Assembly (NCBI RefSeq): GCF_001194135.2
Contig: NC_068982.1
Location: forward strand, 104,405,411-104,460,707
Reading direction: 5' to 3'
Length of the DNA: 55,297 bases
Origin: Octopus bimaculoides
Lineage: Eukaryota
The notes beneath the pieces were generated by a model, which did not search any database, was not told the origin of the DNA, and saw only the letters and a list, made by a program, of their open reading frames with translations. Below, piece after piece: positions 4,974 through 55,297 of the stretch. A program made the translations under genes and the position numbers. Each line of letters starts with the position of its first letter. Position 1 is the stretch's first letter.

Positions 4974-5178
4974 GTAAGTAATATAAGAAACCAGACAAAT
5001 TTCAGTATTATTAGTTTGCATGTAGATAACTTTAATATTTAGATTGAACATTGTTGTCAACTTTTGCATTGTTTAGGTTTACTGATGTGTTATCATATTT
5101 CACTAATGAAATGTTATGTCTGAACTGGCGAAGTTGTGCTACCTTACAAATGCGTGTGTGTGTGTTTTATTATATATC

Positions 5179-13686: not shown

Positions 13687-13839
13687 ATTCAGCAGGCAGA
13701 TGCATGTTTGGTGCTAGCAAATAAATACTGTGATGATCCTGACCAAGAAGATGCTGCAAACATCATGAGAGTAATCTCAATCAAGAATTATCATTCGGAG
13801 ATTAAAGTTATTGTCCAGCTGTTGCAGTATCACAACAAG
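13687..13839 (+). CDS. slo: Slo1/BK exon, RCK1 ([51 protein letters not shown])
   Basis: Acceptor tttcAG and donor AAG|GTaatc; 153 nt, phase 0-0. Near-identical to the [31 protein letters not shown] motif. Confidence 0.98.
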
Positions 13840-15092: not shown

Positions 15093-15161
15093 NNNNNNNN
15101 NNNNNNNNNNNNNNNNNNNNNNNNNNNNNNNNNNNNNNNNNNNNNNNNNNNNNNNNNNNNN

Positions 15162-15530: not shown

Positions 15531-15686
15531 GCTTACCTGTTAAACATTCCCAGCTGGGATTGGAAACGTGGTGATGATGCCGTGTGTATTGCTGAGTTAA
15601 AGCTAGGGTTTATTGCTCAAAGTTGTTTGGCTCCTGGTTTCTCGACACTAATGGCTAATTTATTCACAATGAGGTCTTACAAACCA
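15531..15686 (+). CDS. slo: Slo1/BK exon, RCK1 ([52 protein letters not shown])
   Basis: Acceptor ttttctacAG and donor GTaagt; 156 nt, phase 0-0. Contains the conserved [13 protein letters not shown] and MRS (M513/R514 equivalents). Confidence 0.98.
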
Positions 15687-18482: not shown

Positions 18483-18970
18483 TAGTTTTATTTTTATAAC
18501 GTGCTTTCACTTCACTACCGAACGCAGTTCTGTGCGCCTTGGGTATGTGCTGTGGTTTGCTGTGATGCTCTTATGGTTATTGTATTGAAAGTGTTTTGCA
18601 TAGGATGTGTGCAGTGCTCAGTCGTGCAGTCTTCGGTATGTTATATATATTTGTAAGTCCTGGTGTTTTTGTTATGTATTTGTCTGAATATTTTTTTATT
18701 ATACCTAAGGTACATACTATGATAGGAATTATTATTATTATTATAATCCAAGAAAGCAGCATGCTGGCAGAATCACTTAGCAAGTCAGACAAAATACTTA
18801 GTATTTCTTCCAGCTCTTTACGTTCTGAGTTCAAATTCTGATGCAGCTGGCTTTGCCTTTCATCTTTTCAGGGTCAACAAAATAAGAACCAGTTGAACAC
18901 TTGGATTGATGTAATCATCTTAGCCCCTGTTCAAAAACTGCTGCACTTGAGCCAATATTTGAAACCATTA
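17832..18970 (+). mobile_element. Head-to-tail cluster of four SINE family B copies separated by (ATT)n
   Basis: Copies at about 17832-18061, 18087-18280, 18301-18445 (5' truncated) and 18750-18965, each showing the GAGTTCAAATTC and TTTGCCTTTCATCCTTT cores. Confidence 0.8.
18480..18729 (-). mobile_element. 5'-truncated R4/Dong-like (RLE-type) non-LTR retrotransposon 3' end
   Basis: The minus frame reads IPIIVCTLGIIKKYSDKYITKTPGLTNIYNIPKTARLSTAHILCKTLSIQ*. This fits the C-terminus of restriction-like-endonuclease elements (IPI..GALG...IQK.AL.GTA.ILR). It is followed by a short 3' UTR and has (TAA)n at both ends. Confidence 0.7.
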
Positions 18971-19269
18971 TTTTTAATCCAAGAAAAAGAGATCACACCC
19001 ATATTCTTTCATTAACCAACCTGTTTGACGTCTAACTGTTGTTGTGTAACCTTAAAGAAAAGAATAGGACAGAGATGAAATGAATTATTCTAAATTAGAA
19101 ATCAAACATCTGAGCAATAAGGATTATCTTGATAGTGACAATGTGGTAGTTCAGAATAGCTTATATTAGAAATATTATGATATGGTTTGATCTTAAATTG
19201 TATTTGTTTTTCCATATTTCTATAAAGTGCAACTCAGACAAAATAGGCACAGGTATAGCTGTATAGGTC

Positions 19270-20597: not shown

Positions 20598-20710
20598 TCT
20601 CCTGATATGGCGCAATGGCAGAATGATTACATGAGAGGTACTGCAATGGAAATGTACACAGAATATCTGTCCAGTTCATTTAGTGGGATGACATTTCCAG
20701 AAGCAGCAGA
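20598..20710 (+). CDS. slo: Slo1/BK exon, RCK1 ([37 protein letters not shown]|E)
   Basis: Acceptor ttttttcAG and donor GA|GTattt; 113 nt, phase 0-2. Contains EMYTEY (E535 equivalent). Homologous to the fly site-E exons. Confidence 0.96.
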
Positions 20711-24066: not shown

Positions 24067-24861
24067 TCCACAGGATGGAACATTTTTGTTACAGATGATG
24101 GAAAATATTTGCTTAAAAATTACTATAACAAACTTATTTCTTTTCTTTGAAGTACATTCACACATCATTTATATGCCAGAATTTTACATTTCTCAGTCAG
24201 TAATATTTACAGTAACCATTTCATTATAGAAAAATCTGCCTAAAAATATCAGTTATGGTGTTATGATGGTGTCATAATAGTTAGCTGTTAATGTCATTGT
24301 TAATTATAAATTATCTAAGCTTCATTAAATGTAGGCTAATTACAGGTACCATCTGTAACATCCAGTTCCAGAACAACTGTACAGTTTGTTTCATAATTCA
24401 TTTTTTTTTCAATGTATTTTATCTTTATAGTGTTCACTTTGTTCATTATAAGTTTATATATATNNNNNNNNNNNNNNNNNNNNNNNNNNNNNNNNNNNNN
24501 NNNNNNNNNNNNNNNNNNNNNNNNNNNNNNNNNNNNNNNNNNNNNNNNNNNNNNNNNNNNNNNNNNNNNNNNNNNNNTATATATATATATATATATGTAA
24601 TTACTGTAGGTTTGTTATGATGTAAGTTTAGATAAGCTAGGTGAAAACTAGTTAAAACTTTCTCTTCATGATGATGTTTGCAGTTATTGTTAGAAAGTGC
24701 AATGAGACTAGATCTAGAACTCACTTGGTAATTAAAACCAGATTAGAAATTAGTTGATAAAGCTAAAAGATTATATAGCTGGACATGCATCCTTCTTTGT
24801 TCAGCAGAATTTTCATTTCAACTCAACCAAATTAAAGTGACCACATTTGGGTTTTGTTATT

Positions 24862-28589: not shown

Positions 28590-28903
28590 NNNNNNNNNNN
28601 NNNNNNNNNNNNNNNNNNNNNNNNNNNNNNNNNNNNNNNNNNNNNNNNNNNNNNNNNNNNNNNNNNNNNNNNNNNNNNNNNNNNNNNNNNNNNNNNNNNN
28701 NNNNNNNNNNNNNNNNNNNNNNNNNNNNNNNNNNNNNNNNNNNNNNNNNNNNNNNNNNNNNNNNNNNNNNNNNNNNNNNNNNNNNNNNNNNNNNNNNNNN
28801 NNNNNNNNNNNNNNNNNNNNNNNNNNNNNNNNNNNNNNNNNNNNNNNNNNNNNNNNNNNNNNNNNNNNNNNNNNNNNNNNNNNNNNNNNNNNNNNNNNNN
28901 NNN
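28590..28903. other. Assembly gap (largest of six)
   Basis: N-runs at 15093-15161, 24464-24577, 28590-28903, 30361-30449, 48131-48185 and 51567-51749, all flanked by simple repeats. Confidence 0.99.
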
Positions 28904-29718: not shown

Positions 29719-32126
29719 ATTATCTGCATCTTTTTATTTATTTATTTATTTATTATTTTTTCTATTTCCTTTGGCCAACTCAGCTCAAAATAGATGTTAA
29801 TCTTATTTCATAGCTGAATGGTTAGTAGTAACAAAAGCATCCAGTTGAAAAATACAAATACGAAAAAAAAAAATGCATTTTCTGCAACACATTAAATGCA
29901 AATATTAAAATATACAAAATCCTTCTTACCCTAGTTAAGATAGTTTCTTTATTCCTTTTTAGAAAAAAAAAGAGGGATGTAAAAACTTCTTTTTTTTTTC
30001 ATTTCAAGAATGAAAACATCATTATTTTGTGCAATATTTAGAAAACCAATATTATTCATTTTGTTTATACATACATACACACATACATGCATCCATACAT
30101 ACAAACACACATTCTTTTATTCTTTTATGTGTTTCAGTCCAAAGGCTGTGGCCATACTGGGGCACTGCTAGTGTTATCACTTTTTCAATGGCTATTCTTA
30201 TGCAATTGGCTTTTGGAGAAGGTGGGAGTTCCATATTGCTGCTCTCTTTTCAGTTTCTTGCTGTGATGTAGGTTCATCTGGGGCCTTGGACACCAGGAAG
30301 TCAATTTGTTTCTTGAAAGCATCTACCTTATGTATGTACGTATGTATGTATGTATGTATGNNNNNNNNNNNNNNNNNNNNNNNNNNNNNNNNNNNNNNNN
30401 NNNNNNNNNNNNNNNNNNNNNNNNNNNNNNNNNNNNNNNNNNNNNNNNNGTTTCTTGAAAGCATCTACCTTATGTATGTACGTATGTATGTATGTATGTA
30501 TGTATGTATGTACGTACACACACGTGTGTTTTGTGCAGAAGTAATGAAAATAGAGCACAGAGAGAAGGTAGAAGAATAAACAGATAGTATTATGTTGAGA
30601 CCCAGGAAAATAGAAAAAGAAGGAAATGTCTAATGTTTCAAGTATACACTCTTCTTCTGACAGATAGGATAGAGATGGAAAAGAAAGGAAAAGAAAAATT
30701 TGAAAAATAGATACACACATGTAACCAACCATCATGATGTGGTGAAAAATTGGAAGTAGTTGAGCAGTCGCTTTAGGTGTGAGTGTCAAGGGCTACAACT
30801 GTGACCTGACATGTATGCATGTGTGCTTATTTGCTTGTTTATTTGTATGTGCGTGTGTGTGCTTGTTTGTTTGTGTGTGTGTGAGGCTGTTGTGTGCATT
30901 TATACTGGATAAGCATGTTTATGTGAAAACTGGGGACATTAATGTGTGTTGGGGGTTAGGAAGTGTAGATGTGTCATCATTTTCTGGCTACTATATATAT
31001 ATATGTGTGTGCATATGGATGGCATGTGAAACTAATTGAAGTATATGTGCTAGTGTATGTGCATATTTTTAAGTGTATATGTGGCTTCAATGTGTATGTG
31101 TACTCTGTTTAAATGTTTGTGTGGATGGTGTTGGGTATTTTGCTTATAAGAGTGGTGTAGAGATGTAAGGAATTTTGAATACGGGGACTGTGGGAAAGCA
31201 TGAAATGGGTAGTGTGTATATGAAGTGGTAAAAAAAGTGAAGTTAAACAAACAAGGGGTTGAAAATTAAAACTGTTGGAGATCAAAGTTTAAAAAAGAAA
31301 AAACTAATTCCTGCTCCAGATGGAGACAGAACCCAGGAGGCCTTTATACACTACCAGTTTGAGCACACAGATATTGAAAGGAATGCCAAGCCAAGTGAAG
31401 TGGAGCAAGACTGGAGTTTCATTCCAGAGTCTTTTAACCTATAAGTGTTAAGCAAACATATATACATATATGTATATCATCATCATCATAATTTAGCATC
31501 CATCTTCCATGCTGACATGAGCAGGACAGCTTGACATGATTCAAAATGCTGGAGGACAACATTGAGCTCCAATATCTGTTTTAGCATGGCTTCTGTGGCT
31601 GGATGCCCTTCCCACTGCCAACCACTTTACAGAGTACACTGGGTGGTATTTTTTTCATGATACTAGCATTTGTGAGATTACCAAGTAACTTGTAAGACAT
31701 AGAAAAGATCCGTTGTCTGAGTGGGGTAGTAGTTGAGAGGGAGGTGGCCTTATGCCAGGTTTTGAGAAGCTAAAGTATGATAGAGGGACAGGCATAGGAG
31801 ATACACAGCTACACCACAATATATACAGGTGGAGGGAAGTAGCTAGAAGGAAGATAAAAATGGTTGTGATGAGGTGTCATAAAGTATCAGTGGCATGATG
31901 AACTGTACTCGGTCCACATTGTAAGACATACATAACACCAAAGTCAGACACTCTCTGTTACTGTGTGTGCAAGATGACATAGTCCATGACAATGTCTCCA
32001 ACCTATTCCAGCTTGCAAAAATGGATGAAAGAACTAGAAATTTGTACATTTCTTTTCCACCATGTGATAAAAAAAAATGATATATATATTTGTCTATATT
32101 CTTTTATACTATGTTTTATTTTATAG

Positions 32127-32285
32127 GTTATGTTTCACGAAACTGAAACTCTTGTTGTTAGCTATTGAAGCACGTCTTGGTGATAGCAGAGAAAGTTCTC
32201 TTGCAATTAACCCAGGACCCAAAATCAAAATAGAAAGAGCAACTCAAGGATTCTTCATTGCAGAATCTGCTGAAGAAGTTAAAAG
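32127..32285 (+). CDS. slo: Slo1/BK exon, RCK1 C-lobe ([52 protein letters not shown]|R)
   Basis: Acceptor ttttatAG and donor AAG|GTattt; 159 nt, phase 2-2. Contains LCF.KLKLL..AIE, INPG and GFFIA...EEVKR. Confidence 0.97.
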
Positions 32286-32476
32286 GTATTTTCTTTTGCA
32301 GTATTGGTATATGTATCTCTCTAATAATCCTCATCTATATAATCATCTTCCATAAACAATCCACATGTGTCACTCATTACACTGCAACATCACACTTTTT
32401 ACATATAATCTTTTGCATGAAGAAAAATTTCCCAGCCATTACCAGCAGAAATAACAGTTCCCATCCTATATTTAAA

Positions 32477-34341: not shown

Positions 34342-34418
34342 GGCTTTCTATTATTGCAAGACTTGCCATGGAGTTGTGACAGATGTTCGAGCAATTAAAA
34401 AATGTCGATGTCGACCAG
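34342..34418 (+). CDS. slo: Slo1/BK exon, end of RCK1 with CxxCH heme motif ([25 protein letters not shown])
   Basis: Acceptor gctgttatAG and donor CAG|GTaggg; 77 nt, phase 2-1. Matches human [26 protein letters not shown]. Confidence 0.96.
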
Positions 34419-35065
34419 GTAGGGATGTTGTTTTAATTTGCATGTGTCATTATTAATTTCAACATTGTACTAGAAATGAAGAGACAAGTTTGTAAGCTGA
34501 AAGGAATTTGAAATATCATTAATTGTTGTGAATCATAAAGTACATGGTGAAGAAGATACAAATGTACAATATTTTATTTTGAGGTTATCAATATGATTTT
34601 GTTTGTTTTGAGGTTTGGTATATAAATATATATACGACATACTTCAGTATAATATATTTTTCATATTTTTTGTTATCAATGTGTTTAAATATCTACTGTA
34701 GACCTCCCACAAGGAGAATGTTTTTAAAACGCATAAGTCTCAACTATAAAAATGTTTCAGTTAATCATTGTTTAAAATGCACTTCCATTTTTGTAATTAA
34801 TATAAAAAGCTATAGTGGTATTTCATCAACCACACTGCATTAGACCTTGATCAAAATAAACTCTCATTGTTTTTATTTAGAGAAATAGAGGGAATTATTA
34901 AGTTGTGATATTCCCATCCCCGTTCACATGTTATGCAGTTAAATAACCAGATTTCTTGAAAGTAGATACTTCATTTAATATTACCATAAAACATGTTTAA
35001 CAGTTACACTTAAGACTACATCTCCAATTATAACACCATATAATTTCTGAGTATTGTAATTGAAT

Positions 35066-37165: not shown

Positions 37166-38443
37166 AATGACCAGTCCTTAATAAGTATATACATATGTAT
37201 ATAATATCATTCATGTTGACCACATTGGTCAACAAAACTGCTGAAACATAAAAATTAGAATTATGCTATTCCTCTCCAGGGACAGAATATATTTCAGTTC
37301 TAGCCTGCTGCTGAATTTATATGAAGCACAAATATCCACTACCCTGGAATATGACTCAAATATATGAATGATGCTCCTTACCATATACACACATATCAGC
37401 CAATGAACAGGCTCTCTATGTGATCACTCAACATGCTTGAAATGGCAGTTAAATATTATTCAAATCACACCCTGCTGACCTACAGAAGATAAAGACAATG
37501 TCATCTTAGATGCCTTGAAACAGTTGGATTGGTCATGGCTTGCATGCCTTTGATTATAGGTCTGCTTAATTGGGGTGACATGGAATTAAATAACAATATA
37601 CACATTCTAGATTGCATACTTCTCTACATGAAAGCTATCTATTTTATAGATAAGACTTCACTCATGAGTGCTCTACAACATCTAACTCCATTATCATTCT
37701 TCTGCAGTTGCAATGCAAAAGTTTCTACTCTGCATATACAATGCCCTTAACTTGACCATCAGAACAGATTACTAGTCCTTTAACTTCATCTATCTCCAAC
37801 CATCACCACAGAAGAGCATTGTTGATACTCAGACTAAGAATTAGAAACATACAAATATATGTCTGCATGGGTGTGTGTGCATACACACCTCACACCTATA
37901 GATAAATATCTATATACATATATATTCATATATAGATACATATAAATAGCACAGTATTCACTTGATAGTAATTATAGAAGACAAAGTAAATTAATCATAA
38001 TGTGTATATCATTGTGACACTGACTAGCTATGTCATAAAATTTAACAACCAGAATAACAAGCAAATCAATAAAATACCATAAACTTCTATGTATAACCCT
38101 TCATCATATTTTATTGCTGCTAGCTATTCATTGCAAATTTATCTTTTCTCAGCTTCTTCTCATACTGTTTCCATTATAACATAACAAAAAAATATTCTTT
38201 TACTTACAGCATGCCTTTTTTTAACATTTCATATATTCAAATGGTGTTTTAAATATCTCATAAATCCATCAGTTTCATTAACTCATCTTCATATATATAT
38301 TTTTTTATTTTCCTATTAATATAGTATAACTTAATTTCCTGATTCTATTAACCAACTGAAGTCCCAGACTTGAACAATTATGGAGTATTGATTAAGATAA
38401 CCATACTTATTATTGTTTTCAAATTTCTTTTTCCCTCTCACAG

Positions 38444-38479
38444 TTGCATTATTCCGAAAAGGAGCATCCGCAGTTCTAG
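38444..38479 (+). CDS. slo: Slo1/BK 36-nt linker mini-exon (V-ALFRKGASAVL), phase 1-1
   Basis: Strong acceptor ttctttttccctctcacAG and donor TAG|GTagag; in frame with no stops. The peptide resembles the recalled invertebrate linker segments (fly LATFRKGVRAV, Aplysia LAMFKKGAAAVL). Confidence 0.85.
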   Translation: MHYSEKEHPQF

Positions 38480-38499
38480 GTAGAGTGTAATATTATCTT

Positions 38500-39040
38500 A
38501 TCTGTCACTGTTAGCAGTCAACTCAGTCAAACTATTTCTCTTAGTGCTAACAACAGACTCTGTTGGGTCATACTTGTTAATGATAGTAAACAGTTTTCAT
38601 TGGGTCATTCCATCTAATGGTAACAACAGATTCTTTTGGGCCATCCCATCAAAAATGTAATAATAGATTCTGTTGGGCCATTCCATATAATGGTAACAAC
38701 AGATTCTTTTGGGTCATCCTATCAAAAATGTAATAATAGACTCTGTTGTTCATTCTACCTAATGATAACAACAGACTCTATAAAGTTATACTCCTGAATG
38801 ATAACTTGGGCCTCTATTCAGCCATTTCAACTGGTGGGAACAATAGACTCTGTTGAACCATTTCTAATGCTCAGAACTGACACTGTGCAGCTGTTTCATC
38901 TAATAATAGCTTCAGTCAGTGTTGAGCGATTTCATATAATGGTAACAACAGGTTCTGTTTGGCCATTCCCCTTAATGGTTAAAAAACAGCCTCTGTTGCA
39001 CCAATCTTCTTCTCATTAGCATTAACAGAATCTGTTCAAC
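38500..39040. repeat. Degenerate minisatellite, ~36-37-bp unit, about 14-15 copies
   Basis: The recurring AACAGA(C/T)TCTGTTGGG(C/T)CATTCCAT core starts at 38554, 38591, 38627, 38664, 38700, 38737, 38772, 38844 and onward. A 73-bp dimer is nearly exact at 38627/38700. Confidence 0.85.
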
Positions 39041-39864
39041 TACTTTCTTTCTTTTTAGCTGCTTCTTTTCTTAACTAAAATAATGACTTCAGATATTTTA
39101 ATTTGGGAAAACTCTTTTATTTTATCTATTTGTTGCTTTAAGTATGGTTCATTTATTGGATTATTGGCACATATATTGATTTTAAGAATATCTAAGCTGG
39201 CTTCTACTCATTGTATTCCTGATAAGGACTCATTTTCGTATGACATTTTTTGTTTTTTTCATGATTCATATAAAAATACTAATACACAACTACAGAAATT
39301 TAACTATTTTTTTGCTTTCATTCTAAACTTATCCATCTATAGATAATTTATTATGAGGAATTCAGTTCTATAAATCTTTGAAGAACAATCTCAGTTTTTC
39401 TCTCTAAGATGTGCCAGTAAAACTTGTAAATGACTTTAGTATTTTTTATATGTCACAAAGTCTGGTCCATTGATATTTGTCGCTGCTGTGCATTATGTAT
39501 TTATTATTGTACTTTTGTTTCTTTTCTAAAGGTGAACTTTTTATTCGCTTTTGGTATTTTCATTTCTGTTATTTGTCTTGTCATTCTATAAATAAGTGTA
39601 TATACAAACATATAAATACAAACATACACACACACACACACACACACACATACATACATACATACATACATACATACATACGATGTATATAATTAGGCCT
39701 TTCTGCACTATTCAGAGTTTCATGTAATAGATGTTTCATCATGATATGTGTATAATGTGAAACTCTAAGTAGCAGTGCAAAAGGCACCAGTCAACTACAT
39801 TAAAAAATAATTCTATAGTATTGAGTACTCTTTCTCTCATTCATGACTGTATATATATAAATAT

Positions 39865-39954
<90 letters not shown>

Positions 39955-40269
39955 AATAGCTTGTTTGTAATCTTATTCACAGTGATATTGTATAAGAACA
40001 TCTTTGTGTGTAAAGACACTGATATGTACACTTGTATTTATAAAAAGAAATCATTCTATATGAATACTATGCACCTTTGACATTCTGCATCACATGTATG
40101 TCTCATGATAACTTGTATTTGTTTGTTTTTTGTTTTGTTTTTCATTGTTTACTTCAAGTTTTTTTTATATATTTATCTTTGATTTATTGTCCCAACTCTT
40201 CCCAAAATGTTCTTGTCTTTTGGGGGGGTTTTTCTCCAAACTTCATGAAAATACCTTACTCTATTTGCA

Positions 40270-41570
40270 TTTAAATCTCATTAAAAACAACTTTATCTTT
40301 CATCCTCTAAGGGAGATTGATAAATTAAGTAGCAGGCAAATGCTGAGGTTGATTCAATAGAAAACACCTTTCCCCCAAATGTATGGCTATGGTGGCCTGT
40401 TTAAGAAATTATTCTAGTGAACAGAATCTGTGGGACAGGGGAAAAAAATGCTTTCCAGTATTTATTCTGGTTCTTTAACTTGTAATTTCAAATTCCATAC
40501 CAGTCACCTTTGCCTTTTATTCTTCTGAGGTTGATCAAATAATATACTAGTCATATGCTAAGATCTATGTAATTAATTGTTCCCCCTTATTATTATTGTT
40601 GTTGTTATTATTATTATTATTATTATTATTGTTATTATTATTATTATTAGTAGTAGTAGTAGTAATAATAATAATAAGGCAGAATCATTAGCACACCAGG
40701 CAAAATGCTTAGTGGTATTTTGTTCATCTTTACGTTCTGAGTTCAAGGTCATCTTTGCCTTTCGTCCTTTCAAGGTTGATAAATCAAGTGTCACTCAAGT
40801 ACTGAGGTCAGTGGGATCGACTTACCTCCTTCCCACAAATTTCAGACTTTGTGCCTATAGTAGAAAGGATTATTATGTTTATTAAAGAGCTGAAGGATTG
40901 GTAGAATCATTAGAGCTTTGAACAAAATACCTTGGGATAATTAGTTCCTGCTCTTTACATTCTGAATTCAAATCCTGCTACAGTCAATTTTGCCTTTCAG
41001 AGTCAATAAAACAGAATGCCAATGAAGTATTGAGGTTGATGTAATTGACTATTTCCCTCACCTATAATTTGATGCTTTTTGCCTTTGGAAGAAATCATTT
41101 TAATCATTAGAGCAATGAGTTGGCTGAATCATTTGTGTCAGAAATAGTACATCACAGTATTTCTTCCTACATTTATGTTCTGAGTTCAATATCTTCTGAA
41201 GTCAGCTTTACCTTTCCTCTTTTTGGGTTTGATGAAATAAAGTATCAGCCAAGTTCTGGGATTGGTGGTATCAGCCAAATCCCTACTTCTGAAATTGCTG
41301 GCCTTATGCCAAAATTTGAAACCATTAATTATTATTATTGTTGTTTTTATTATTATTATTATCATTATTATTAAGGCAGAAGCTGGCAGAATTGTTAGTG
41401 CACAGAACAAAATACTTAGCTGTAATTTGTCTGTCTTACATCCTGAGTTCAAACTCTGCAAAGGTTTCAGGGTTTATTAAATGAGTATCAGCTGAGCACT
41501 GGAATCAATGTTATCAGCTAGCTCCTCCAAGGAAATCTCAGGCCTTGTCACTATAATACAAAGGATTTTA
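40270..41570 (+). mobile_element. Head-to-tail array of about six diverged SINE family B copies with (ATT)n spacers
   Basis: Copies at about 40270-40400, 40410-40590, 40676-40870, 40885-41100, 41107-41325 and 41372-41570. Confidence 0.75.
40588..40676. repeat. (ATT)n/(GTT)n/(AGT)n/(AAT)n compound trinucleotide repeat
   Basis: Direct inspection. It explains the poly-Ile/Ser/Asn ORFs at 40573-40885. Confidence 0.95.
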
Positions 41571-41936
41571 TTATTACATTTTCCAATTTTTTTTTTGTAA
41601 CCATTTAATATATTGTTACTTTTTCCCTACACATAAGGTAAGTAATGTTTCATTTATAATTCACCTTTGATTTTATTTATTGATCATTGCATTAATTCAT
41701 TCTTTGCTAAAATTAAATATATGCAAAATATGTCCCTATACATGCTTTTCTGATTTTTTTTTTTTTTTCAGTACATATTTTAAATATCAGTGTTTATTTC
41801 TACAGGCTGTTACTACTCTAGCTATGAAAAATATTCTTTTTCGTTGTTTATTATTCATACAGTTGTTTTTGCTCCCCTTTCTTTCTTTCTGTCTCTCAAA
41901 ATTTTTGAGATAATTCATCTTTATTTCTTTTTACAG

Positions 41937-41942
41937 CATCGG
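41937..41942 (+). CDS. slo: Candidate 6-nt microexon CATCGG adding Ala-Ser to the RCK1-RCK2 linker, phase 1-1
   Basis: Long pyrimidine tract ending tttatttctttttacAG, then CATCGG, then GTaaga. Frame-preserving. Three TGCATG motifs lie downstream (42128, 42428, 42468). There is no transcript evidence. Confidence 0.55.
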
Positions 41943-42149
41943 GTAAGAAAATACAGCACTTTGTAACTATTATGGTTAGATGGCAGTAATATGCCACACA
42001 CATCTTGTGCTTTATTTAATGCATTTAAATCATTGTAGTTATTGTTGTTGTGGTTTCAACCATTGTATCTTTTGATTTTTAATAGTTAGTAAAGCCATGC
42101 TAGTAGTTGATTGGTATACCCTTTGTTTGCATGAATTGGATTTACCCTT

Positions 42150-42199
<50 letters not shown>

Positions 42200-42899
42200 A
42201 TATATATGTTTATATATTTGAGTTTTTTTCTCAGTTAATGTTTTATGGCTGTTGTAAGTTGAATAAATGATATCATCCCAGTTTATATTAGATATAACAA
42301 ACCTTTGCCAGACACTGTACACACTCTAACCCAATGGTATATTGAGCACTTTTATGCTTTGTTCCACAAAATATAGAAGATATATTACTCACTGTATTTA
42401 GTCTTGTATATGCTGTACCCTATACTTTGCATGGAAAAGCTGATCCAAATTTGTTATTATCTAATTCTGCATGGAAGATGAGACTAGAAGGGTCAGGGAG
42501 CTTTTCAAAATTGTATAACATGTGTACCGTTCTTAGTAGAGTTAAACAATTAAATTTTTAACACATTGATTATAGAATAACCACATCATGCATAATACAT
42601 AACCAAAAATTATATTATGATATCAAAGAAAACCATTAAAGCAAATTTAATAAGTCATCAATTAACGTTCAAGGTTAAGCTCAATTATGAAACCATCAAT
42701 CAATAACAAAATATTATTAATTACAACTTTAAGAAATCAATGTTAAAATCAATTTAAAAGTCAAAGTTAAATGTTTCCTCATCACTGATGCTAAAAACGA
42801 CCTCCTATTTCTTGTATCAAATGTTTGTCTGCATCCTATGATGTTATTAATTCATCCATCTTCTTATGTTTTGGTTGTGTTGGTCATTAACTCGCAAAT

Positions 42900-43030
42900 A
42901 GTAATCTTCAGAAGCCCTCTATTTTCAAGAAGCTCTAAATTACTATCTCATTAGAAATATCATTCTATGCATTCTTCACCCATTATTTTATAAGGGACAC
43001 ACTTGGTTTCTTGAAGTTGCCATTTTTGGT
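42900..43030 (-). mobile_element. Fossil pogo/Tigger-like (DDE_1) transposase C-terminal fragment
   Basis: The minus frame reads TKNGNFKKPSVSLIK*WVKNA*NDISNEIVI*SFLK, matching the T..GN.K.PS....W...AW..I....I..SF.K pattern. Three stops. Confidence 0.55.
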
Positions 43031-43316
43031 CAGTTTCTTTTAGTATGAAGACATTCAGGTCATCTGCATCTGACACATTCTATCCTTCAATAACTTATTC
43101 AGCACCACATCCTTCAGATGACAGTGAGGCAATCCAAGGTTGTGGTAGAAGACATCCAAGGTGTTGCACAGTGGGATGAAGCCTCAGACCACATGAGTGT
43201 GAGATGAACTTATCATTTGGCAATGCTTGTAACATTACATGTATGTCTAAACTTAGCTAAGCACTTACGCATTCAAACATACATGTACACACATATGCAC
43301 TCATACATATACGCAC

Positions 43317-43625
43317 AGGCTCTTCTTGATATATAGAAAAGGTGTAGGTAGAAACTCCATAAGATGTACCCGGTGCAAGCTATGGACACATAAGAGGTGC
43401 AGCAATATCAGAGGAAAGTTAACAGGGAAAATGGTCTCTGTGTGTGGCAGATGCACAGGTATAATAAACACTAGAAATATACAGAAAATAGATTCTACCA
43501 GATGCCAAGTGGGATATCTAGAAGATGATGATTGCTTTCATTATCTAGGTGACCAAGTCAGCAGTAGTGGTAGATGCCCTGAGAGTGTAGCTGCTAGAGT
43601 AAGAATAGGTTGGGCAAAGTTCAGT
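43317..43625 (+). mobile_element. RTE-clade LINE ORF fragment (Cys-rich zinc-binding insert after RT)
   Basis: RKGVGRNSIRCTRCKLWTHKRCSNIRGKL...CGRC...F.YLGDQVSSSGRCPESVAARVRIGWAKF is typical of RTE/BovB-like ORFs. It is homologous to the VHKKCSGIK remnant at about 33200. Confidence 0.8.
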
Positions 43626-45624
43626 GTGCATGTATGACAGAGTGTAAGCATCTTAAGAGAAAAAAATGGGTATAAGGGGCATCAGATGTGGTATGTAAGA
43701 GAGATGACTGTGCTGATATGGCCATGTGATGTGTATTTACTTTGTTATATTGTTTAGTACATCAAAAGAATTGACATTGTTAATCAATTCATGTGTTACT
43801 TTTTCATTAACTTAATTCCTTTTGATTAAAGTGCTCTGGTTAATTAATATAGAATAATAGAAATTTAGCTTTAATTAACAGAGATCCAACTAATTATTCT
43901 GGGGAAAATATCTTAAGGAAAAACACAGAGAATAGTGAAGATCTCTGCAAAACTTTGGAGGAAAGGGAGGGCAAAAGGAGAGGAAAGAAAAGGAGGGGGA
44001 ATAATTGGTATATAGAGATAGCTATAATCACAGCAATCATAACCTATAAATGCTTAAATAGAAAAAAAATAGGGTAAATCTAATGGAGAAAGTAAGCAAC
44101 ACTGTTGGCAGAAGATGGTGTTGACATAACAAACAAATAAATGTGTATACTAGACTAATGAAAGTAGTTTAGGCTATAATCAGTGTCAACATAAAGGATA
44201 TAAATATTGTAAAGATACCACCTAAGGTTAAGAGCAAACTATAAAATTAGTTCATTATAAAATATATAAAATTACAATCATTGGTGTATGCCATTAGAAC
44301 TAAAGGTACACAAAAGTAGCTTAAATATGATCAGTTATTAGTATTAGCAGTATTAAGCTATGCTAGGCTACCTAAATATAATCTATGACTCTTATTACTA
44401 GTAATTAAGGTCTGTATTGTAAGTTATAGATATGTATCTAGACTCAGAGAAGACTTTATAGAATTGGCTTAAAGTATAAGAAAGTTCTATGGATAGAATG
44501 TAAACATTTGATCCTTAATTCATCTGATCTATTAACAGTTTAAGATTTCTGACAATTCCTAACAGCAAAGATTGCAATCATATCTATCACTTACATAAGG
44601 CTTAACATGTCTAGCAACATTTCACATTAGAGGGTACTCAATATTTTTGTCCTTTAACTCCCAGACTTTCACAGAGAGCAATATTGTTTCCACTTTATCT
44701 CTCCTTGTAAATGTGTGATTATAAATCTTGATTTAAAATTAGAGGAAATGGATCCTACATAAGTGAAAGTCTATAGATTAGTTTTACCATTACATTTATA
44801 CACAAGGTTTTGATCAGGTATTTATTTCCTAGCATTTCTTCTAAAAATTGCATAATCTAGTTAATGTCAGGATGGAAATATTGTGGGTTACATAACTCAT
44901 ACTACTACGCAGTACACAGCTATAATCAGTAGAGTGTGCAGTAGCCACTCCATCAACACTTACATTACCATGATTTGTACTGTTGCTTTGTATATATGCA
45001 TATATACGCAAAAATATATGTATGCATACATCATATCAAAAGCAAGTAATATAAGCGAAACTCCGTTGGGTTTGACAATGAATATTTACAGTTGTTCAAT
45101 CAACTGAACTTACCAAAGTACTCAATATTCACCTATACATGGAACATAGTATATAATTTTAGGGTTCTGTAGAAACTTCTATTTGATGGCTTTACATTGT
45201 ATCTAGGAATCTGGACACCACAATCTTCATCAGACTTTTGAAATAGATCCAGATATAAAAGATAAGTTTGCTTTTCCTACAAACCATAAAACCATGGTGC
45301 AGGAAAAACCAAATGCACTAAATATATATACATATGTATGTGCATACACTTGTATGTATAAGCACATGCATTATTTATGACTAGGCCTATCTGTTTCAAA
45401 AGTAATAAAACTTGTCTTTGTGTTACCATAATTAATGTAATAATTATAAACTATATAAGTTTTAATTACATGCTTTGCTGTTTCATTTGTAGATTAGATT
45501 AGAAATACATAGTTTAACTATTAACATTCTAGATTGCAAATTTTGGTGTTGATGTTGTTTAGTTGGTTTTATTTGTTATAGATTTTTAATACCAAAATTC
45601 CCTATGGAATATTCAACAATGAGG

Positions 45625-45684
<60 letters not shown>

Positions 45685-46189
45685 AAACTTACTTGGAAGA
45701 GGATGCATAGCATTCAATCATATAATAATATAAATAATATATATATATGCATATATACATATGTATATGTACATACTTACATCTATACGTGTGTATATAT
45801 ATATATACATACATATATATTTTTTACTTCAGTTACCGACCCATTTTCTCTTTTGCTACTTTTATTATCAGCTGTTATTAGAGTAACATAGATTGGCTGC
45901 TGAAGTGAAGATATTAGAAAAGTTTCAAGTTAATAGACAATATTATGAAGGGTGGTACTAAAAATGATGAAGATGATAATAATGCTATAGTTATGTTGGT
46001 TGTAATATAGTTTGAATTATCTTCAGTATTTAGAATGATGAATGTTATATTTCTTGTGAGACAACTGCAAGAATCAAATCAAACAAACAAGATAATTGTG
46101 TATTTGTTGACCTATAAAAACCTATGATGATGTCCCACACTCTTTAGTGTGATAATTAAAAAGAAATCTAGGTATGTATGAATGGTAAA

Positions 46190-46470
46190 TGACAAATATT
46201 TATGTTATTAATGGTAAGACAAAGAGTCAGGGTTATTGTAATCTCAGACATATAGAGGAATGCATGGTGTGTCATAACCAGTTTTCTTTTGTCCATTCTA
46301 TTCTATGAAACAGTTACAAATCAAATACCATTAAGAACTTTTTTATGTTAATGATTTGGTTCTTGTTGCAAAATATTTTGAAGAACCACGGAAACCAGAA
46401 GCTTTGAAGAGTAAGCTTCATTAAATGAATTGAAGATAAATGTGGCTATCATAAGTTAGAATTAGAAACT
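46190..46470 (+). mobile_element. Highly decayed reverse-transcriptase fossil (RTE-like)
   Basis: Remnant frames YVNDLVLVAK (cf. YADDLVLIAE) and ELKINV (cf. GLKVNV). Very diverged. Confidence 0.35.
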
Positions 46471-49400
46471 ACACCTTCAAAATCAAGAAGAAGCCTTGTT
46501 CACTATGAAAGGAAAGAAAATCATGGAATTAAATACTATGAGGTTTGTGGAACAATTGTATCAGCAAAAATAAAGAAAGGTGCAATGAGATCTCTGGTAG
46601 ATTGACTGAAAGCTGAATTTTAAGTGTAACACATGAGGCAGAATGGCTTAGAATATAAGAAATCATGACTTTAAACCAGAAATTTTTCAGATGGCACATA
46701 GATGTTGTTGGCAGAATTAGTGATAGCATAATTACTAGGAGGTTGGAATTAATGATTTTATAGTGACTATGATGTAGATAGGAGATAATTTTATAGACGT
46801 GATATTGCAAAAAAAATAATGATATATTTTTACCATGCAAAAACCAGATTATTTAGCTAATGTTTAAGAAGTGTTATCCTGTAATTTTAGCAAAACATGA
46901 GCAATGAAAGAGAAATTGGACTTTGTCTATAAGATGATTCTTGCTAAATTAATGATAAAGACTATACAAGTATTCAAGAAAGCATTAAGGAACATATAAC
47001 AAAAGAATATTGAATATGCTAGGTAAAAAGTGCTGTGAGTTTGTGATAACAGGTTCTTATGTTAAAGATAAAATAAGGAATTCCTAGGAAGAATTAGTTC
47101 AGAATTCACAATATTTAGCTTCAGAATTGGAAAGGGAATGACATAGATACATAAAAAGAAACTTCATTGCAATCCAGTGACGATGATTAGTTTCTCTACT
47201 GACATATATTAGAAATTCCTCAAACAAATAAATAAGTTGTATAATAGTGTTTACTTAAGTGTAATTTTGTTGGAAACTCCTATTTAACTTGCCAATTAAT
47301 CAATATAGCTTTTCACATCAGTGACTATGGAAATGTTTCTAAACACACTTAAGTGTTAATAGCAGGAGATACCAGCTTCTCAGTCAAGTAGAATATATTA
47401 TGCTCGATTTGGCATAGGATGACTTGTCTATTCATTCACAACCACGTGGTGAAATTATAAACACACAAGGAAAAACAATCTGGCTGGAAAGGAATTTATT
47501 TTCAACAATGTATCCTTAATGAATGTTCTAATAGTTGTCAATGCTACTGTTTTAGCTGCTACACTATTATTGGTATGTCATGGTCTGAAAAATTTGCCTC
47601 ATTTTATAAACTAGGGTGAGCACAAACATTATTTACTCTTGTGCATATGAAAACGGAGTGAGTAGTGGTGATCCTAAAGGTTTTCAGATTTTACAGATTT
47701 ATCTTTAGGTGTGCGGATAATAATCAGTTGAGGTTACAGAGTCACTGCAGGAAATACACTTTCTTGTTCTGAATACAAATTCACACACACACACACACGC
47801 ATGTAATTTTCAGCATATGAGTATTTGAAGGAAAGGGTTAAAAAAAAAGAAGCTACATCTATTTGTGATGGATGAGTGAATGTAATTTGAGTCCAGGTAT
47901 GGATTTTGTTATGAAGTCACAATAGGGATAATTATGGTTTGGATTCTGCCTGGGATTGTGTTTGTTGATCACAGGATATAATTCTTTTATTGTTTTGCTT
48001 CCTAACTCAAATTGTTTAACTGCATTATGACACATTTTATACCACTCAGATCAATCTAGGCAATAACTTTCCCAAGATGTTGAATAAAGCTGTAGGGATT
48101 GTCTCAACTTATCTTTATATATATATATATNNNNNNNNNNNNNNNNNNNNNNNNNNNNNNNNNNNNNNNNNNNNNNNNNNNNNNNTATATATATAATCAT
48201 AGTTTTGTGGCCAGTTTCTGTGATGCATGAGTTGGACAGATCTTATCTCCTAGGCAAGCTAGGGAACCATATCCCATTCCAAGTTCCGGTTTTGAGCTTT
48301 GTTTCCATGGCTGGATGTTTTTCTTAGCACCAACCATTTTACAGAATCGACTGGGTGTATTATATGATGGCACCAACTCTAAAAAATGTTTCATAGTTTT
48401 GACAAGACTAAATGTCTTGACCTGCTTAATAGAATGTATTAAGTGCCTTTTATTGTGGCACGAGCACTTGAGAGAATTGCTATGTCTTTGAGAACACTCA
48501 GTGGTACTCTTGATTCCCATGTCTCTGCTCCTTCTCATTCTCACTTTACAGAGTGTCCTAGCTGGAATTTTGGTGGCACTAACACAAGTGGGGTTGCCAA
48601 TTACCATGTAAGAATAGAGAGTCCTCATCACTGGAATGCACTTGTTCACTCAGGACGACTATGTAGCTAATGAGCTGAATAGAAGAGAACAACAATGATA
48701 GAAGAACCAGCGTAGGTGGAAAAGAGGAGCAAGAGTGTGATAGTAAAAGTAACATCTTTCCTTCACTGCATTTACCTACTGCCCTTTACTCTCTGCTTCA
48801 TTTTCCTTCTACTGCCTCTCCCCACAGCTTCCCCTCCTCCAACATCTCTTCCAATCATTCTTCCTCACAACTCCCACATCTCTCCTTTGATTACTTTCTC
48901 AAGATTCCTGTCTACCTTAATCTATTTCTCCTTTTTCTCCAACTTTCTGTCCATACTCACTTCTTATGATGTTGGATAACCCTAAATCTCCACACACATC
49001 CCACTCATTCACCTTTCAACTCTAACCTCCCCCTTTTTCTCAACCCCTGTTCCTACTCCCTTTTTTTCCTGTTCCTTGTCAACTCCTCCCCATCTTTTCA
49101 TCTTATAATCTCTTATTCCTCTACTTAGAATCATTGCTAACTCTTAGTTGTATGGGCCATTTTTCCGTCCTTAGTCTTGTAAGTTACAAGGCAATCTTCA
49201 GTAGCACTGGTGTCATAAGAAAAAAAGACACCCATTACATTCTGAAAAGTAGTTATCATCAGGAAAGGCATCCACCCATAGAAATTATGTCAAAGTAAAC
49301 ATTGGTACATGACACAGTCCTCCAGTTCACCAGATCCACTCAAACTCTCCAACCCATACCAGCATGGAAGCCAGATGTTAAATGATGCTGATGTATGTAG

Positions 49401-51824
49401 TTGGAATGCTTGTAGCTGTAACCTGTATGATATAGTGTCTGCATGGATGACAGGGTGAAAACTATCCTATAGTCTGAGTCAAAAGAACCTGGACATTCCT
49501 TCATAGCATCAGTGTTCCTCATCACTTTTGTGTGTAGAAGACAACAGCAGCTGTAGTGTTCATCAGTTTTATGTAATGTGTTTACATTACTGATTCAGTA
49601 TGTTTTTTTGTTAGCCAATCTCAGATAAGTTACAACAGTGTTTATGTTAGTCAACATAAACTGTGTAGGATGATAACACGTTTGTTAGCTATATTAACAA
49701 ACATCAATTCTACAAATCATTTAACATGTGCGATAAGTTGTTTTAGTAACACGTGTTTTTAGAAAACTGACCCCAATACAGCTGTTCATATTTCATATCT
49801 AAGTAATATTAAATGGCTTTATGTATTATTATCATGAATACAAGATTGTAAGTGGAGACATGTGTGAGCAATATGCTTAAATTCAAGAGATTGGTAAGCC
49901 TAATAACAGAATAGCTTCTAGTTATACTAATTGAATATAAAATTACAAAGAAGAGTTTTTAACAAGAGAAACAAGTGACTGCCTTTCTGACTGGTTGACT
50001 AAACAAATGTTTGAATTTATAGGAACAATTGTCTATTTGATAGAGGTATGACAAAATTTGCAGCATAGTAGTAGAAAAGTAAGATGAAAGCTTGGAGTTA
50101 AGTTAAAACTTATATTTGAAGCTGAGATCAAATACGACTCATATTGCTTTCTTTACATATTCATCTCTTCCCCTTCTATTAATTTGAAGGAGTAGCTAAC
50201 TAGATTTCTTAATAGCATTGAAGGTGTGAAATAATTTCAGTCTTGCTATAACTTTAGTTCAAAATAATCTCTTGCTAACAATACAAACTCAGTTTCTTAT
50301 ATAAATATTTTACTTTTAAAAATATTGTGTTCCCTATCAATACATATATTAATGTATTATAAGTGACTAAAGTATTGGACTACTGACCTGTTTGTTATAT
50401 TTTCTACCTCAGATATTTCAATGTCTTCCTGCGGCATTTTTTTTTTTTTTCAATTCTGAAAGCCTTGCTTCATCTAACCCTAGAAATAAATAGCAGAGCT
50501 TATGACAGTGTTATTTATCATACACAAAATAATTTATGTGCTAAGAAATTAAAACTATTAAAAAAGTTTCTACACCTCTTTAGCAACTGGAAACGTCATG
50601 TCACCTCCTGCTACTCTGTTAATAATTTTGATTGAATCATATATTTATGTGTTTTTTTTTTTGGTGGTGGGGGGTTATTGTAAAAATGTCATGATAGAAT
50701 TCAATACATAAGCTTTGTCCTGATTAAAAAGAAATTATGAGTGTAATAGAGAATCATGGGTTATTTTTGAAGGCAACATAATCATATCTAGCTGGTGGAT
50801 TGATACTGAATATTCACTTTGAGAAGAATTCTCTTAAAAATAACCAATGTGTCAACATTCAGATGTGTTGTTGGTTAGGGCCATATTAGCCTGATCGAGC
50901 AACCCTATGATCAATGTGTGTGTTTTAGTTTTCTGGAGATTTAATGCAGACAGAATACTCTTATATGCAACAATGTTATAATTAAAACATTCTAACCATT
51001 TATAACAACATATTCTAGTTAAAAATTACTATAGAAACACAACTAAATACTAAATTCTTAATGAAGCTATAAGTTTCTAAATGTGATATCAAGCTTGTTC
51101 ACCATACATACGCATAAGCATATGACCAACATGCATCATATATGATTTAGAAGCTTATAATTTGGAATTTAGGATTACATAAGTAATTAGCAGTTATTTG
51201 TCAGTTTCTATCAATGTAGTAACAACAACAATTTCTGACCAATTTACATATAAAAGGGGATTTGTTTGTATGATAGTGTATAGAGTAATGTATTATTCAA
51301 AAGACTTCCAACTCTGTCTGTTTGAAACACTTCTGTCACACAGGACCTTGAAGATTGCTAGAAAGCAGGAAAGTATACTAGTCCATAAATATTTAATATT
51401 CAATATTTCATTTATTCAATAAGACATTCAATACTTCATTTCATTTTAATATATATACTATATATTCCATATTCTATATCCCACATTAATTTTATAAGAA
51501 TATAAATAAAACATAAAAAACAGACAGAGTTGGAATTCTTTTGAATAATATATATATATATATATANNNNNNNNNNNNNNNNNNNNNNNNNNNNNNNNNN
51601 NNNNNNNNNNNNNNNNNNNNNNNNNNNNNNNNNNNNNNNNNNNNNNNNNNNNNNNNNNNNNNNNNNNNNNNNNNNNNNNNNNNNNNNNNNNNNNNNNNNN
51701 NNNNNNNNNNNNNNNNNNNNNNNNNNNNNNNNNNNNNNNNNNNNNNNNNATATATATATGTATGTATATGTATGTATGTATATGTATGTATGTATATGTA
51801 TGTATGTATATGTATGTATATATG

Positions 51825-51856
<32 letters not shown>

Positions 51857-53060
51857 TGAGGCTGGATGTATGTTGACTTCAGTTATGGAGCTGTATTCCT
51901 AGTTACATTATTGTATGTGCACATATACACACACACATACACACATTTATGCTCCTCATTTTCATTTGAGTAACAAACTACACAGGACCCCCTCAGATGA
52001 ACTTATCCAAAGCCAACTCAATGATTATTTAAAAAAACTTTTTTCAGTTGTAATCTACCACTAAATGCATAATACATATTTAAACAATGGTTATACACAA
52101 AGAAATTCCAGTAATGTACTCAGTTTGAATCTAGTGTCTCATGAAATTTTCATTTTAGAATTCAGGAATTATCTTCCAAATAACTATTGTGTCTGCTTCC
52201 AGATTTGTTCCTGTTTAAGCCCAGCTTGGCTCTGATCAGATATGCTTCTGATCAAAGTTGTTCCATTTTGAAAGGTTGGGTATAACATGTCTAGGACTAT
52301 ATTATTTACTGTGATCTTTTTGTTATGATAGTTGAGCTTGAGTGATTCAAATAAAATTGAATGTGGATCTCATCAGTTAATAGTAGAAGCCACAAACATC
52401 AATAAATTTGTAAAAGAAGCCTTGTTCAGCATGCAAGAAACGTCAAAGACTAAGGTTTTAACAAAATAATGGTATCGGTAACAAATATGAAAATATTATA
52501 ATTTTAGACAGAAATTATTAAAAATTGGAGAAAATTAATCTTTGGTTTAATAAAAGCCAGATAAAATAAAAACCATGTGCTTCAGAGAGGAATTATATTC
52601 AGTATGAAGAAAACCATGTATTATCTACCTCCTGTTTTTATCATGTGTAATTTTTTTATGCCTCTGCTTTGATGGTATGTTATGTTCTCATCTAAACTTC
52701 CTTGTTACTCTTTCCCTTCAGCATTACAAAGAAGGTCTGAATTGGTACACACAGACAACCAAATAGGTATTCAAATAGATTTATCACTGCCACTACACAT
52801 CTCAATCATTCTTTCTCTCTTCTATGTCTCTTTCTCTCTCCCACTGTGTGTAATTTCACTCTCTCTGTGCCTCACTTCTGCTTTTCTGGCCTTCACTTGC
52901 TCAACTTCACTGTATATTTTGAGGACATTTACAGAGACCTACACATGTGGGTATATATATATAAATAAAATACACATGCATATACTTTTATGTATACATT
53001 ATATATTCATGAATTATATATGTGTATATATTATATATATGTATGCATATTTTGAGTGTA

Positions 53061-53116
<56 letters not shown>

Positions 53117-53599
53117 TATATATGCATATATATGCAAGGCTCCAGTTGAATTACTAAAACTGGCAAAATGAAATGAAATAATAATATATTGCTAACATTA
53201 GTCACTCCAACAGAATACTGAATATAGTTTTGTTATGGAAGTATTCCAAGTCAGTAAAAATATGTATGTATGGGAACCAGGATATGAATCTTTTGTCACT
53301 GGTTTCATATCATCCATTTATTCTCACAAACATTTGTCAAGCTTTCACTGAAGTTTACAGTGGCCACATTAAGTAGTGATGGATGGCAGAGTTTCACATA
53401 TGTAATATGAGGATTTGAGTACTACTTCTTCTGCAGTTGTCTCACTAGGAAGATGGCATTCTTGGTACCTTTTCTCAGCACAAAGCCAAACTAAATTCAT
53501 TTAGCTATTTTTGTTCCTCATCAATCAGGTTATAATTCTGCAAATTTCATAATCAGTTTCATCAATTTGGTAATATTTGATATATATATATATAATTTA

Positions 53600-53703
53600 T
53601 ACATACATGCATGCATACATACATACATACATACATACATACATACATACATACATACATACATACATACATACATACATACATACACACATACATACAT
53701 ATA
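53600..53703. repeat. (CATA)n tetranucleotide repeat
   Basis: Direct inspection. Similar tracts at 30330-30510, 39650-39680 and 51750-51857. Confidence 0.95.
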
Positions 53704-54326
53704 CTATACTTGATAAGCTTATTGTATATAGCGTTCAGGTGCACTACAACTTGTCGTAAAAGAGGGGACAGAAAGCAGCAATAACTAAAGAAATCAGCAA
53801 TGTTAGCTTAAAGCAGATGCAGAGTACACAGAATAAAACACCTGAACACAGAATTGTAAATGGTACCATGGAATCTTTGAAGAATGTACTGTCCTAACAG
53901 CTAACAACTAATGTAAATAGCTTATTCTATTCTGAACATAACGAAAAAAAATGTTTCCAAAAGTCATGGATGCTGTGTTATTTTTTGATATATTAAACAT
54001 GTTCCCAGGTGGTAAAGATGCTGGATCATAAAAGGTGACCAAAGTTGTTGTTGGAAAGATAGTGGATAATGTTATGGGATTTTTGCCAAGTCACTTACTA
54101 AACATTGAAGATTTAGTGTGTCAGTGCCCAGAGAAGCAAAGGTCCAAGAATTTGAGAATTTTTCTTTGATAATTTAACTGATTTTTCTCAATACAGATCA
54201 GGACCATGGCAAAAGAATTAAGCCAAGATGAATTTTTTTAATATCAAAACTCTTTCCAAGCAATGCAAACTTGTCTTATTTTGGGAATTTTATACACGTA
54301 TATATATATATAATATGTACATGTGT

Positions 54327-54429
<103 letters not shown>

Positions 54430-55264
54430 CATATGTATATATACACACACACACAAATATATTAAAATATATACATACACAAACATAACCACACACTATA
54501 TATAATTGCATGTATGTATATAGATAGAGAAAAGGTTATCCCTTTATAAGTCAAGGTTTTTCTTTTTACATTCTAGTTTGTATTGTGTATTGTCCAAAAA
54601 TTTTGATCACATGATCTTGTTAGAGTTATCTCCCTTAATTATTGTTGTTTAGATCTTAAACATCTCCAGAGACAGATATTGTCCCTCATTACAAGGATAA
54701 TATTAATTAATTGAAGTTTTTCAACTCTTTATATTACATATCGTGAGACTCTATCCTATGTATACTTTCTATGTATGCATATAAGTTATCAAGCAAATAT
54801 ACATACATTTTGTGTAAATGTTTATTAGCACATATTCATGTAATCACATAAACACATATCACAGCATTATCTTTCTCAAAGATTTTCTCTATTCTTTTTT
54901 CTTGCCACCCCACCTATATTCTTCCATTTCTTAATGTATTCTAGATACTTGCTTATTCTGTTGTTTCTCATTGTTTCTTGGCAAGACAACTCTTGCATTT
55001 CCATCAGTGTTCATCTGGGGATTTGGTTATATTGGTTGGTGATTTCTTTCTTTCTTTTTAAGCTATTTTAGAGAAAACCTCAATGCTTAAGTAACATCTA
55101 ATGTATTCTTAATCTTTTGCACATTTTCAGCTTTCAGTTGACTTCTGGAAAAAATCTTTGCTTGGTGCTTTCTGGCTTTTTCTTATCTCTCTTCATTCCT
55201 CTCACCATATTCTCTTTTCCTCATTCTCTCATTCTCCAACTGCTTAAACTTTTTTGTGAGTTGA

Positions 55265-55297
<33 letters not shown>

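Follow-up and report, generated by a model that had tools for sequence, protein, structure and literature searches.

A candidate six-nucleotide cassette exon in a linker intron of the octopus Slo/BK channel gene

The Slo/BK gene and its linker exons

The window (the whole stretch of Octopus bimaculoides DNA analysed, 55,297 nucleotides) lies within a gene for a Slo/BK (slowpoke, KCNMA1-type) calcium-activated potassium channel, the + strand encoding the RCK1 domain together with the first part of the RCK1-RCK2 linker. The protein assembled from the exons matches Pfam PF22614 (Slo-like_RCK, 3.9e-35) and PF03493 (BK_channel_a, 6.3e-33), documenting the presence of an RCK1 domain and of the BK alpha-subunit signature. 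BK structures from Aplysia, Drosophila and human all match it with E values from 1e-137 to 1e-186, the alignment with the Aplysia structures in the PDB covering residues 333-643 (E = 3.6e-186). The exons are located as follows.

1193-1303, + strand: Slo/BK exon
4868-4973, + strand: Slo/BK exon B
13687-13839, + strand: Slo/BK exon
15531-15686, + strand: Slo/BK exon
20598-20710, + strand: Slo/BK exon
32127-32285, + strand: Slo/BK exon F
34342-34418, + strand: Slo/BK exon G
38444-38479, + strand: exon H, 36 nt, encoding VALFRKGASAVL and, together with a G supplied by exon G, V-ALFRKGASAVL; phase 1 at both ends
52722-52766, + strand: exon I, 45 nt, translated as ALQRRSELVHTDNQI and likewise in phase 1 at both ends; the partner 3' of exon H

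Exon H ends with GCA GTT CTA G, in phase 1, and has homologues in Aplysia (LAMFKKGAAAVL) and in two mollusc ENA contigs, L001 and L002 (VAMFKKGAAAVL), distant comparators with compact introns that carry exons F, G, H and I. Exon I, the DNA of which reads CATTACAAAGAAGG..., with GCA TTA CAA AGA as its first codons, was located by means of these two loci; its homologues read ALQRTPGLTIESDGHTS in L001 (16136-16188) and ALQRTPGL in Aplysia. An Aplysia cDNA with the sequence ...FKKGAAAVLALQRTPGL confirms that exons H and I are directly joined. The intron that separates them in the octopus is 14.2 kb long, and the hexamer CATCGG considered below is positioned 3.5 kb inside it. Exon I, which had not been named in the initial annotation of this DNA, is itself of micro-exon size and bears an RRS motif.

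The window is AT-rich, CpG-depleted and cephalopod-like. The observed to expected ratio of CpG is 0.18 window-wide, as compared with 1.0 for GpC, and the density of CpG is 3.5-fold higher in exons. There are six runs of N, at 15093-15161, 24464-24577, 28590-28903, 30361-30449, 48131-48185 and 51567-51749. In L001 (18657-19142) and L002 (16690-17186), a block conserved between both contigs is present 3' of the linker exons. Downstream of a CAG acceptor this block reads SSSGDSQSSLSPDSSHLRGEKNKLIMKNKKREKDVVIPMDSQSKSRLSM-stop, possibly an alternative terminal exon that would truncate the channel after RCK1, and it has no match in the window.

The candidate exon and its splice signals

Within the intron between exons H and I, a hexamer bounded by AG and GT is preceded by elements appropriate to a 3' splice site.

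41860-41897, + strand: CU-rich distal block, 87% pyrimidine, in which CTTTCT/TCTT recurs
41914-41918, + strand: putative branch point TTCAT, by direct reading, with its A at 41917, 20 nt 5' of the candidate exon
41919-41936, + strand: U-rich polypyrimidine tract and acceptor CTTTATTTCTTTTTACAG; acceptor score 6.3, inside the range of the real exons (2.1-10.4)
41937-41942, + strand: candidate cassette exon CATCGG, 6 nt, read G|CA TCG G (Ala-Ser) with phase 1 kept; contains one CpG
41943-41948, + strand: donor GTAAGA with CGG immediately 5'; score 6.1, higher than six of the eight confirmed donors scored

In the initial annotation a CATCGG microexon had been placed between ttttacAG and GTaaga, and that description is exact to the base: the text reads ...ttcatctttatttctttttacAG|CATCGG|GTaagaaa, with the AG at 41935-41936, the hexamer at 41937-41942 and GTAAGA at 41943-41948. 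The wider flanks are TTCATCTTTATTTCTTTTTACAG on the 5' side and GTAAGAAA on the 3' side. The pyrimidine-rich run of ~75 nt described upstream is also readily apparent, 76% of the residues from 41860 to 41934 being pyrimidines, a level reached in 1.4% of the 75-nt windows of the sequence. It consists of two blocks, 41860-41897 (87%) and 41914-41934 (86%), separated by an A-rich stretch. The first block is located 5' of the last AG that precedes the acceptor and therefore is not the functional polypyrimidine tract, although it is possible that it provides a PTB-type binding platform. From 41910 to the acceptor the sequence is free of AG, and the TTCAT at 41914-41918 conforms to the branch-point consensus yUnAy.

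With exon H ending in phase 1, joining CATCGG to this 36-nt exon does generate AVL-A-S, as had been proposed. Inclusion is predicted to convert ...RKGASAVL-ALQRRSEL... to ...RKGASAVL-AS-ALQRRSEL.... The junction predicted for skipping is written GTTCTAG|CATTACAAAG or GCAGTTCTAGCATTACAAAG, and the sequences predicted for inclusion are GTTCTAGCATCGGCATTAC and CTAGCATCGGCATTAC, with the junctions GCAGTTCTAGCATCGGCATTACAAAG. The candidate has canonical AG and GT dinucleotides, a competent acceptor and a competent donor, keeps the reading frame and introduces no stop codon. A recursive splice site (ratchet point) was considered and rejected: six bases part the AG from the GT, and the junction with exon H, CTAG|CATCGG, has no GT. 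A structured RNA was likewise rejected, with no Rfam match at the gathering threshold in the region 38000-55297 and an unexceptional local folding z of -0.91, as was derivation of the site from a repeat or transposon, no second copy being present inside the window, the microsatellite aside.

Splice sites were scored with a crude position-weight matrix, an approximate human-type consensus rather than a cephalopod model, with the base composition of the window as background, and eight confirmed exons, exon I being left out, were scored in the same way. On this scale the confirmed exons have acceptors of 2.1 to 10.4 and donors of -6.0 to 7.8, and CATCGG has a summed score of 12.4 (6.3 + 6.1), the highest on the + strand of the window among AG...GT pairs 3-30 nt apart. 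The runner-up in the intron between exons H and I has a score of 5.7. On either strand of the window, CATCGG is the sole 3-30-nt pair in which both scores are at least 6; the - strand has two exon-like sites at 12.0-12.2, but these scores are acceptor-driven, with donors of 1.5-1.7. In the equivalent intron of L001 and L002 the best candidate reaches 0.7, in comparison with which 12.4 is unusual.

Dinucleotide shuffling yields 0.125 sites of such quality per 55-kb strand when 28 exon lengths are allowed, and ~0.01 in-frame sites when the count is limited to the 10 in-frame lengths and the 14.2-kb intron. In 669 kb of real AT-rich sequence, used as an empirical null, one further independent site had an acceptor and a donor score of 6 or more, an estimate that derives from a single event and is close to the shuffle figure. 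The chance that an intronic 6-mer contains a CpG, as CATCGG does, is ~2%. The top microexon-like site of the null set, at 7441-7463 in L001 with a matching site in L002, is on the minus strand of both contigs, antisense to conserved exon D, and most likely arises as a side effect of coding conservation. A lenient filter applied to the three downstream introns left two stop-free, phase-preserving exon candidates no longer than 400 nt, CATCGG and 48552-48587. The latter is 36 nt long, encodes ECPSWNFGGTNT, has a score of 10.9 and is located in a region (48197-48670) where both strands have long ORFs and which is possibly transposon-derived.

Comparison with other Slo/BK linkers

Two homology arguments in the initial annotation do not survive comparison with the sequences concerned. 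An Ala that follows AVL in Aplysia had been cited, but the cDNA reads ...AAAVL-ALQRTPGL and this Ala is encoded by the codon that opens the 45-nt exon I, with no microexon involved. Similarly, the RAS-DI stretch of a fly isoform occurs as ...AVQMVGRAS-DITRD, in which GRAS aligns with the QRRS of octopus exon I; Drosophila isoform J reads ...AVQMVGRASDITRD. The two-residue insert is absent from the Aplysia cDNA at AVL-ALQR, and there is no conserved block or microexon candidate between exons H and I in L001 or L002. With no counterpart in these two contigs the exon, if real, is lineage-specific or at least not ancestral to molluscs.

Protein queries of 92, 52 and 143 aa, together with exhaustive HMMER searches, returned short ORF fragments and distant relatives, none with a cephalopod exon H or I, and the 52-aa query, the exon G-H-I peptide, matched two unrelated genomic ORFs only. 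No mollusc Slo above ~68% identity was obtained by exhaustive HMMER and no full-length Slo by the word-indexed searches. The Aplysia BK of the PDB nevertheless aligns closely, at 3.6e-186, and absence from the collections searched is therefore not evidence about the exon. An exact look-up of ten ORFs from the window, including one that ends 24 nt before the candidate, found none in the protein collection, none of 62 loci from a scan of JGI metagenomes was close, and a Logan contig (L065) was too distant and too short to provide a usable orthologue. No homologue of the arthropod, nematode or vertebrate linker cassettes, STREX included, was found in the window. The literature search found no paper with the peptide strings and nothing on cephalopod slowpoke splicing; a splicing atlas of Octopus bimaculoides exists as a preprint.

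Short inserts in this part of the channel occur in vertebrates. The four-residue SRKR insert of KCNMA1 is at C-terminal splice site 1, and IYF and STREX occur at a further insert site in the linker. The octopus candidate resembles SRKR in its gene family, in its location in the RCK1-RCK2 linker and in being a very short frame-preserving insert, here five residues N-terminal to the RRS of exon I. It differs in linker position and sequence, is half the size, shows no sign of exon homology and is absent from Aplysia. The SRKR insert acts by enabling the phosphorylation of an adjacent constitutive serine (PMC3840922). The octopus insert had itself been credited with a phosphorylatable Ser but, as read from the sequence, V-L-A-S-A-L fits no basophilic, acidophilic or proline-directed kinase consensus, so that the Ser is phosphorylatable in name only and a new phospho-site is a weak claim.

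In arthropods, cassettes that follow ...AVQ-(M/V)(V/I)GRA(S) occupy the corresponding junction region of this protein, but they are placed after the equivalent of exon I, not before it, and have no sequence in common with Ala-Ser. Four arthropod metatranscriptome contigs (L003, L005, L007 and L008) differ immediately after ...AVQVIGRA(S), where they have the cassettes NDHVTPQFTPPELPKRVHVRG (21 aa) and ADYSICDS (8 aa). This is direct evidence for short alternative cassettes at a neighbouring junction in another phylum. The linker is a recurrent splicing hot spot in which vertebrates and arthropods have independently placed short regulatory inserts.

Flanking motifs, regulation and interpretation

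Downstream of the donor, the + strand has three TGCATG motifs and one microsatellite.

42128-42133, + strand: TGCATG, proximal Rbfox-type motif, +186 from the donor
42155-42198, + strand: (TG)22 microsatellite, +212, between the first and the later TGCATG motifs; the sole microsatellite nearby
42428-42433, + strand: TGCATG, distal, +486 from the donor
42468-42473, + strand: TGCATG, distal, +526 from the donor

These motifs are where they had been reported to be, at 42128, 42428 and 42468, outside microsatellites and without overlap with the (TG)22 repeat, to which CELF/TDP-43-type factors might bind. The + strand of the window has 33 copies of TGCATG. The probability that at least three copies occur within the 531 nt after a fixed point is 0.004, and the probability that some 346-nt window anywhere holds three is 0.40. 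The cluster 3' of the candidate is the only one of its kind on the + strand, and it counts only through its coincidence with a splice-site pair that is independently top-ranked. Rbfox motifs in the downstream intron are typically within ~300 nt of the exon, as is one of the three (+186), the other two being further away. Upstream, sequences that could function as PTB-type motifs, with PTB binding putative, are present as TCTT at -57, -53, -19 and -11 and as CTTTCT at -60, -56 and -52.

A downstream enhancer and an upstream repressor form the architecture of the N1 exon of c-src, an 18-nt neuronal exon. The appeal of the initial annotation to downstream UGCAUG with Rbfox-type control as an established pattern is well founded, as alternative micro-exons have TGCATG over-represented downstream and pyrimidine-rich motifs upstream, with RBFOX and PTBP1 as their regulators (Li et al. 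2015, PMC4317164). The octopus candidate shares with these their tiny size, the TGCATG downstream and CU-rich sequence upstream, and with them the logic of a 3' enhancer and a 5' repressor. In those micro-exons and in c-src N1, however, the motifs are conserved, mostly proximal and CLIP-bound, whereas two of the three octopus motifs are ~500 nt away and all three are putative binding sites. An Rbfox homologue has been reported from Octopus vulgaris transcriptomes (PMC5736919). In comparison with the neural microexons controlled by SRRM3/4 (eMIC), the candidate has the size class, a neuronal ion-channel host gene and a strong pyrimidine tract, but lacks the UGC that these have near the acceptor. 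Control of the SRRM3/4 type had already been called unsupported on this basis, and the present analysis agrees: the defining UGC between the polypyrimidine tract and the acceptor AG is missing, and the sole TGC within 110 nt upstream is at -67.

The ~0.01 in-frame site pairs expected, the P of 0.004 for the TGCATG cluster and the ~0.02 for the CpG jointly argue against chance, and make a reasonably good sequence-level case for a real microexon. We consider it the likeliest reading, at odds about even or slightly better, that CATCGG at 41937-41942 is a genuine and probably alternatively used 6-nt cassette exon of the intron between exons H and I, possibly lineage-specific. Control of this candidate by Rbfox, suggested by the motif counts, is plausible but a weaker inference than the exon itself. 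If real, the candidate joins kinds of element that are already known, the BK linker micro-inserts and the Rbfox-type microexons.

Exons of six bases are difficult to splice and long introns commonly harbour strong pseudo-exons, and there is a substantial, though lesser, likelihood that CATCGG is such a chance pseudo-exon: a T-rich stretch of intron that ends in CAG, with a GTAAG six bases further on, that is spliced never or to a negligible extent and has no relationship to the TGCATG motifs. Consistent with this, the site was picked after a scan of 55 kb, it is not conserved in L001 and L002, the comparators at hand, the Aplysia cDNA has no insert, and the homology arguments from Aplysia and fly have both collapsed. 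A three-motif cluster somewhere in the window is not surprising (P = 0.40), and the - strand has two sites with scores almost as high. The joint occurrence of the features listed above is, however, unlikely by chance, and in the two - strand sites the high score comes entirely from the acceptor. Should CATCGG not be spliced, it provides a caution that the best-looking AG-N6-GT, even with a homology that seems to support it, may be a decoy; here that homology belonged to the neighbouring exon I.

A microexon that is real but not controlled by Rbfox appears quite unlikely. Such an exon might be constitutive in the lineage, or controlled by a PTB-type factor, by a CELF/TDP-43-type factor bound to the (UG)22 or by an eMIC/Srrm-type activator that does not use a canonical UGC. 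The constitutive micro-exons of PMC4317164 do have a similar combination of a strong donor with a strong U-rich tract, here 5-20 nt upstream. TCTT occurs four times and CTTTCT three times on the upstream side, a (TG)22 is at +212, and two of the three TGCATG are distal. Against this, the TGCATG cluster is statistically the most striking of the flanking features and, for the Srrm3/4 route, the 66 nt next to the acceptor lack a UGC. It is highly improbable that the acceptor is used without the adjacent donor, giving a longer poison or terminal exon (ASGKKIQHFVTIMVRWQ-stop) and a channel truncated after RCK1: the frame past the acceptor does stay open for 17 codons to a TAA, and the conserved L001 block at 18657-19142, with its stop-ended ORF, suggests that truncating exons may exist in this gene family, but a donor as strong as that directly after the six bases (6.1) would normally be used and there is no homology between this stretch of the window and the L001 block.

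For the preferred reading, a cassette exon of six nucleotides, a mechanism can be proposed. The branch point at about -20 and the short U-rich tract would recruit U2AF and U2, and the strong GTAAG donor would recruit U1. Six bases being too few for ordinary exon definition, inclusion is proposed to depend on intronic enhancers, for which the UGCAUG motifs at +186, +486 and +526 are the best candidates, presumably bound by an Rbfox homologue in neurons or muscle. In other tissues, the CU-rich block 40-75 nt upstream may serve as a platform for a PTB-type repressor. The effect on the channel would be a two-residue change in spacing beside the RRS motif of exon I, not the introduction of a new phospho-site.

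BK channels set spike width and transmitter release. If the exon is confirmed, a cephalopod two-residue insert would add a third lineage to the pattern of linker inserts, the presence or absence of Ala-Ser would be a simple handle for electrophysiology, and the locus would allow Rbfox-type control of extreme microexons to be tested in molluscs. A more specific version, that a cephalopod-specific, Rbfox-dependent 6-nt exon arose de novo in the BK linker and that the shift in RRS spacing tunes kinase regulation or gating in neurons or muscle, is rather doubtful as a whole. If true, splicing would add to the RNA-editing-based diversification of cephalopod ion channels, and, outside vertebrates and insects, few documented regulated exons would be as short.

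The sequence downstream of the TGCATG cluster includes, ~850 nt past it (43326-43637), a Cys/His-rich ORF of 103 aa with weak PHD/C1-type Pfam matches that is probably a mobile-element remnant. TGCATG is also present at 34439-34444 (+21 after exon G), 5017-5022 (+44 after exon B) and 32414-32419 (+129 after exon F). With the candidate included, 4 of 10 exons have a TGCATG no more than 300 nt downstream, as compared with ~1.6 expected, and the motifs near exons B, F and G hint at a wider Rbfox-type input to the Slo/BK gene.
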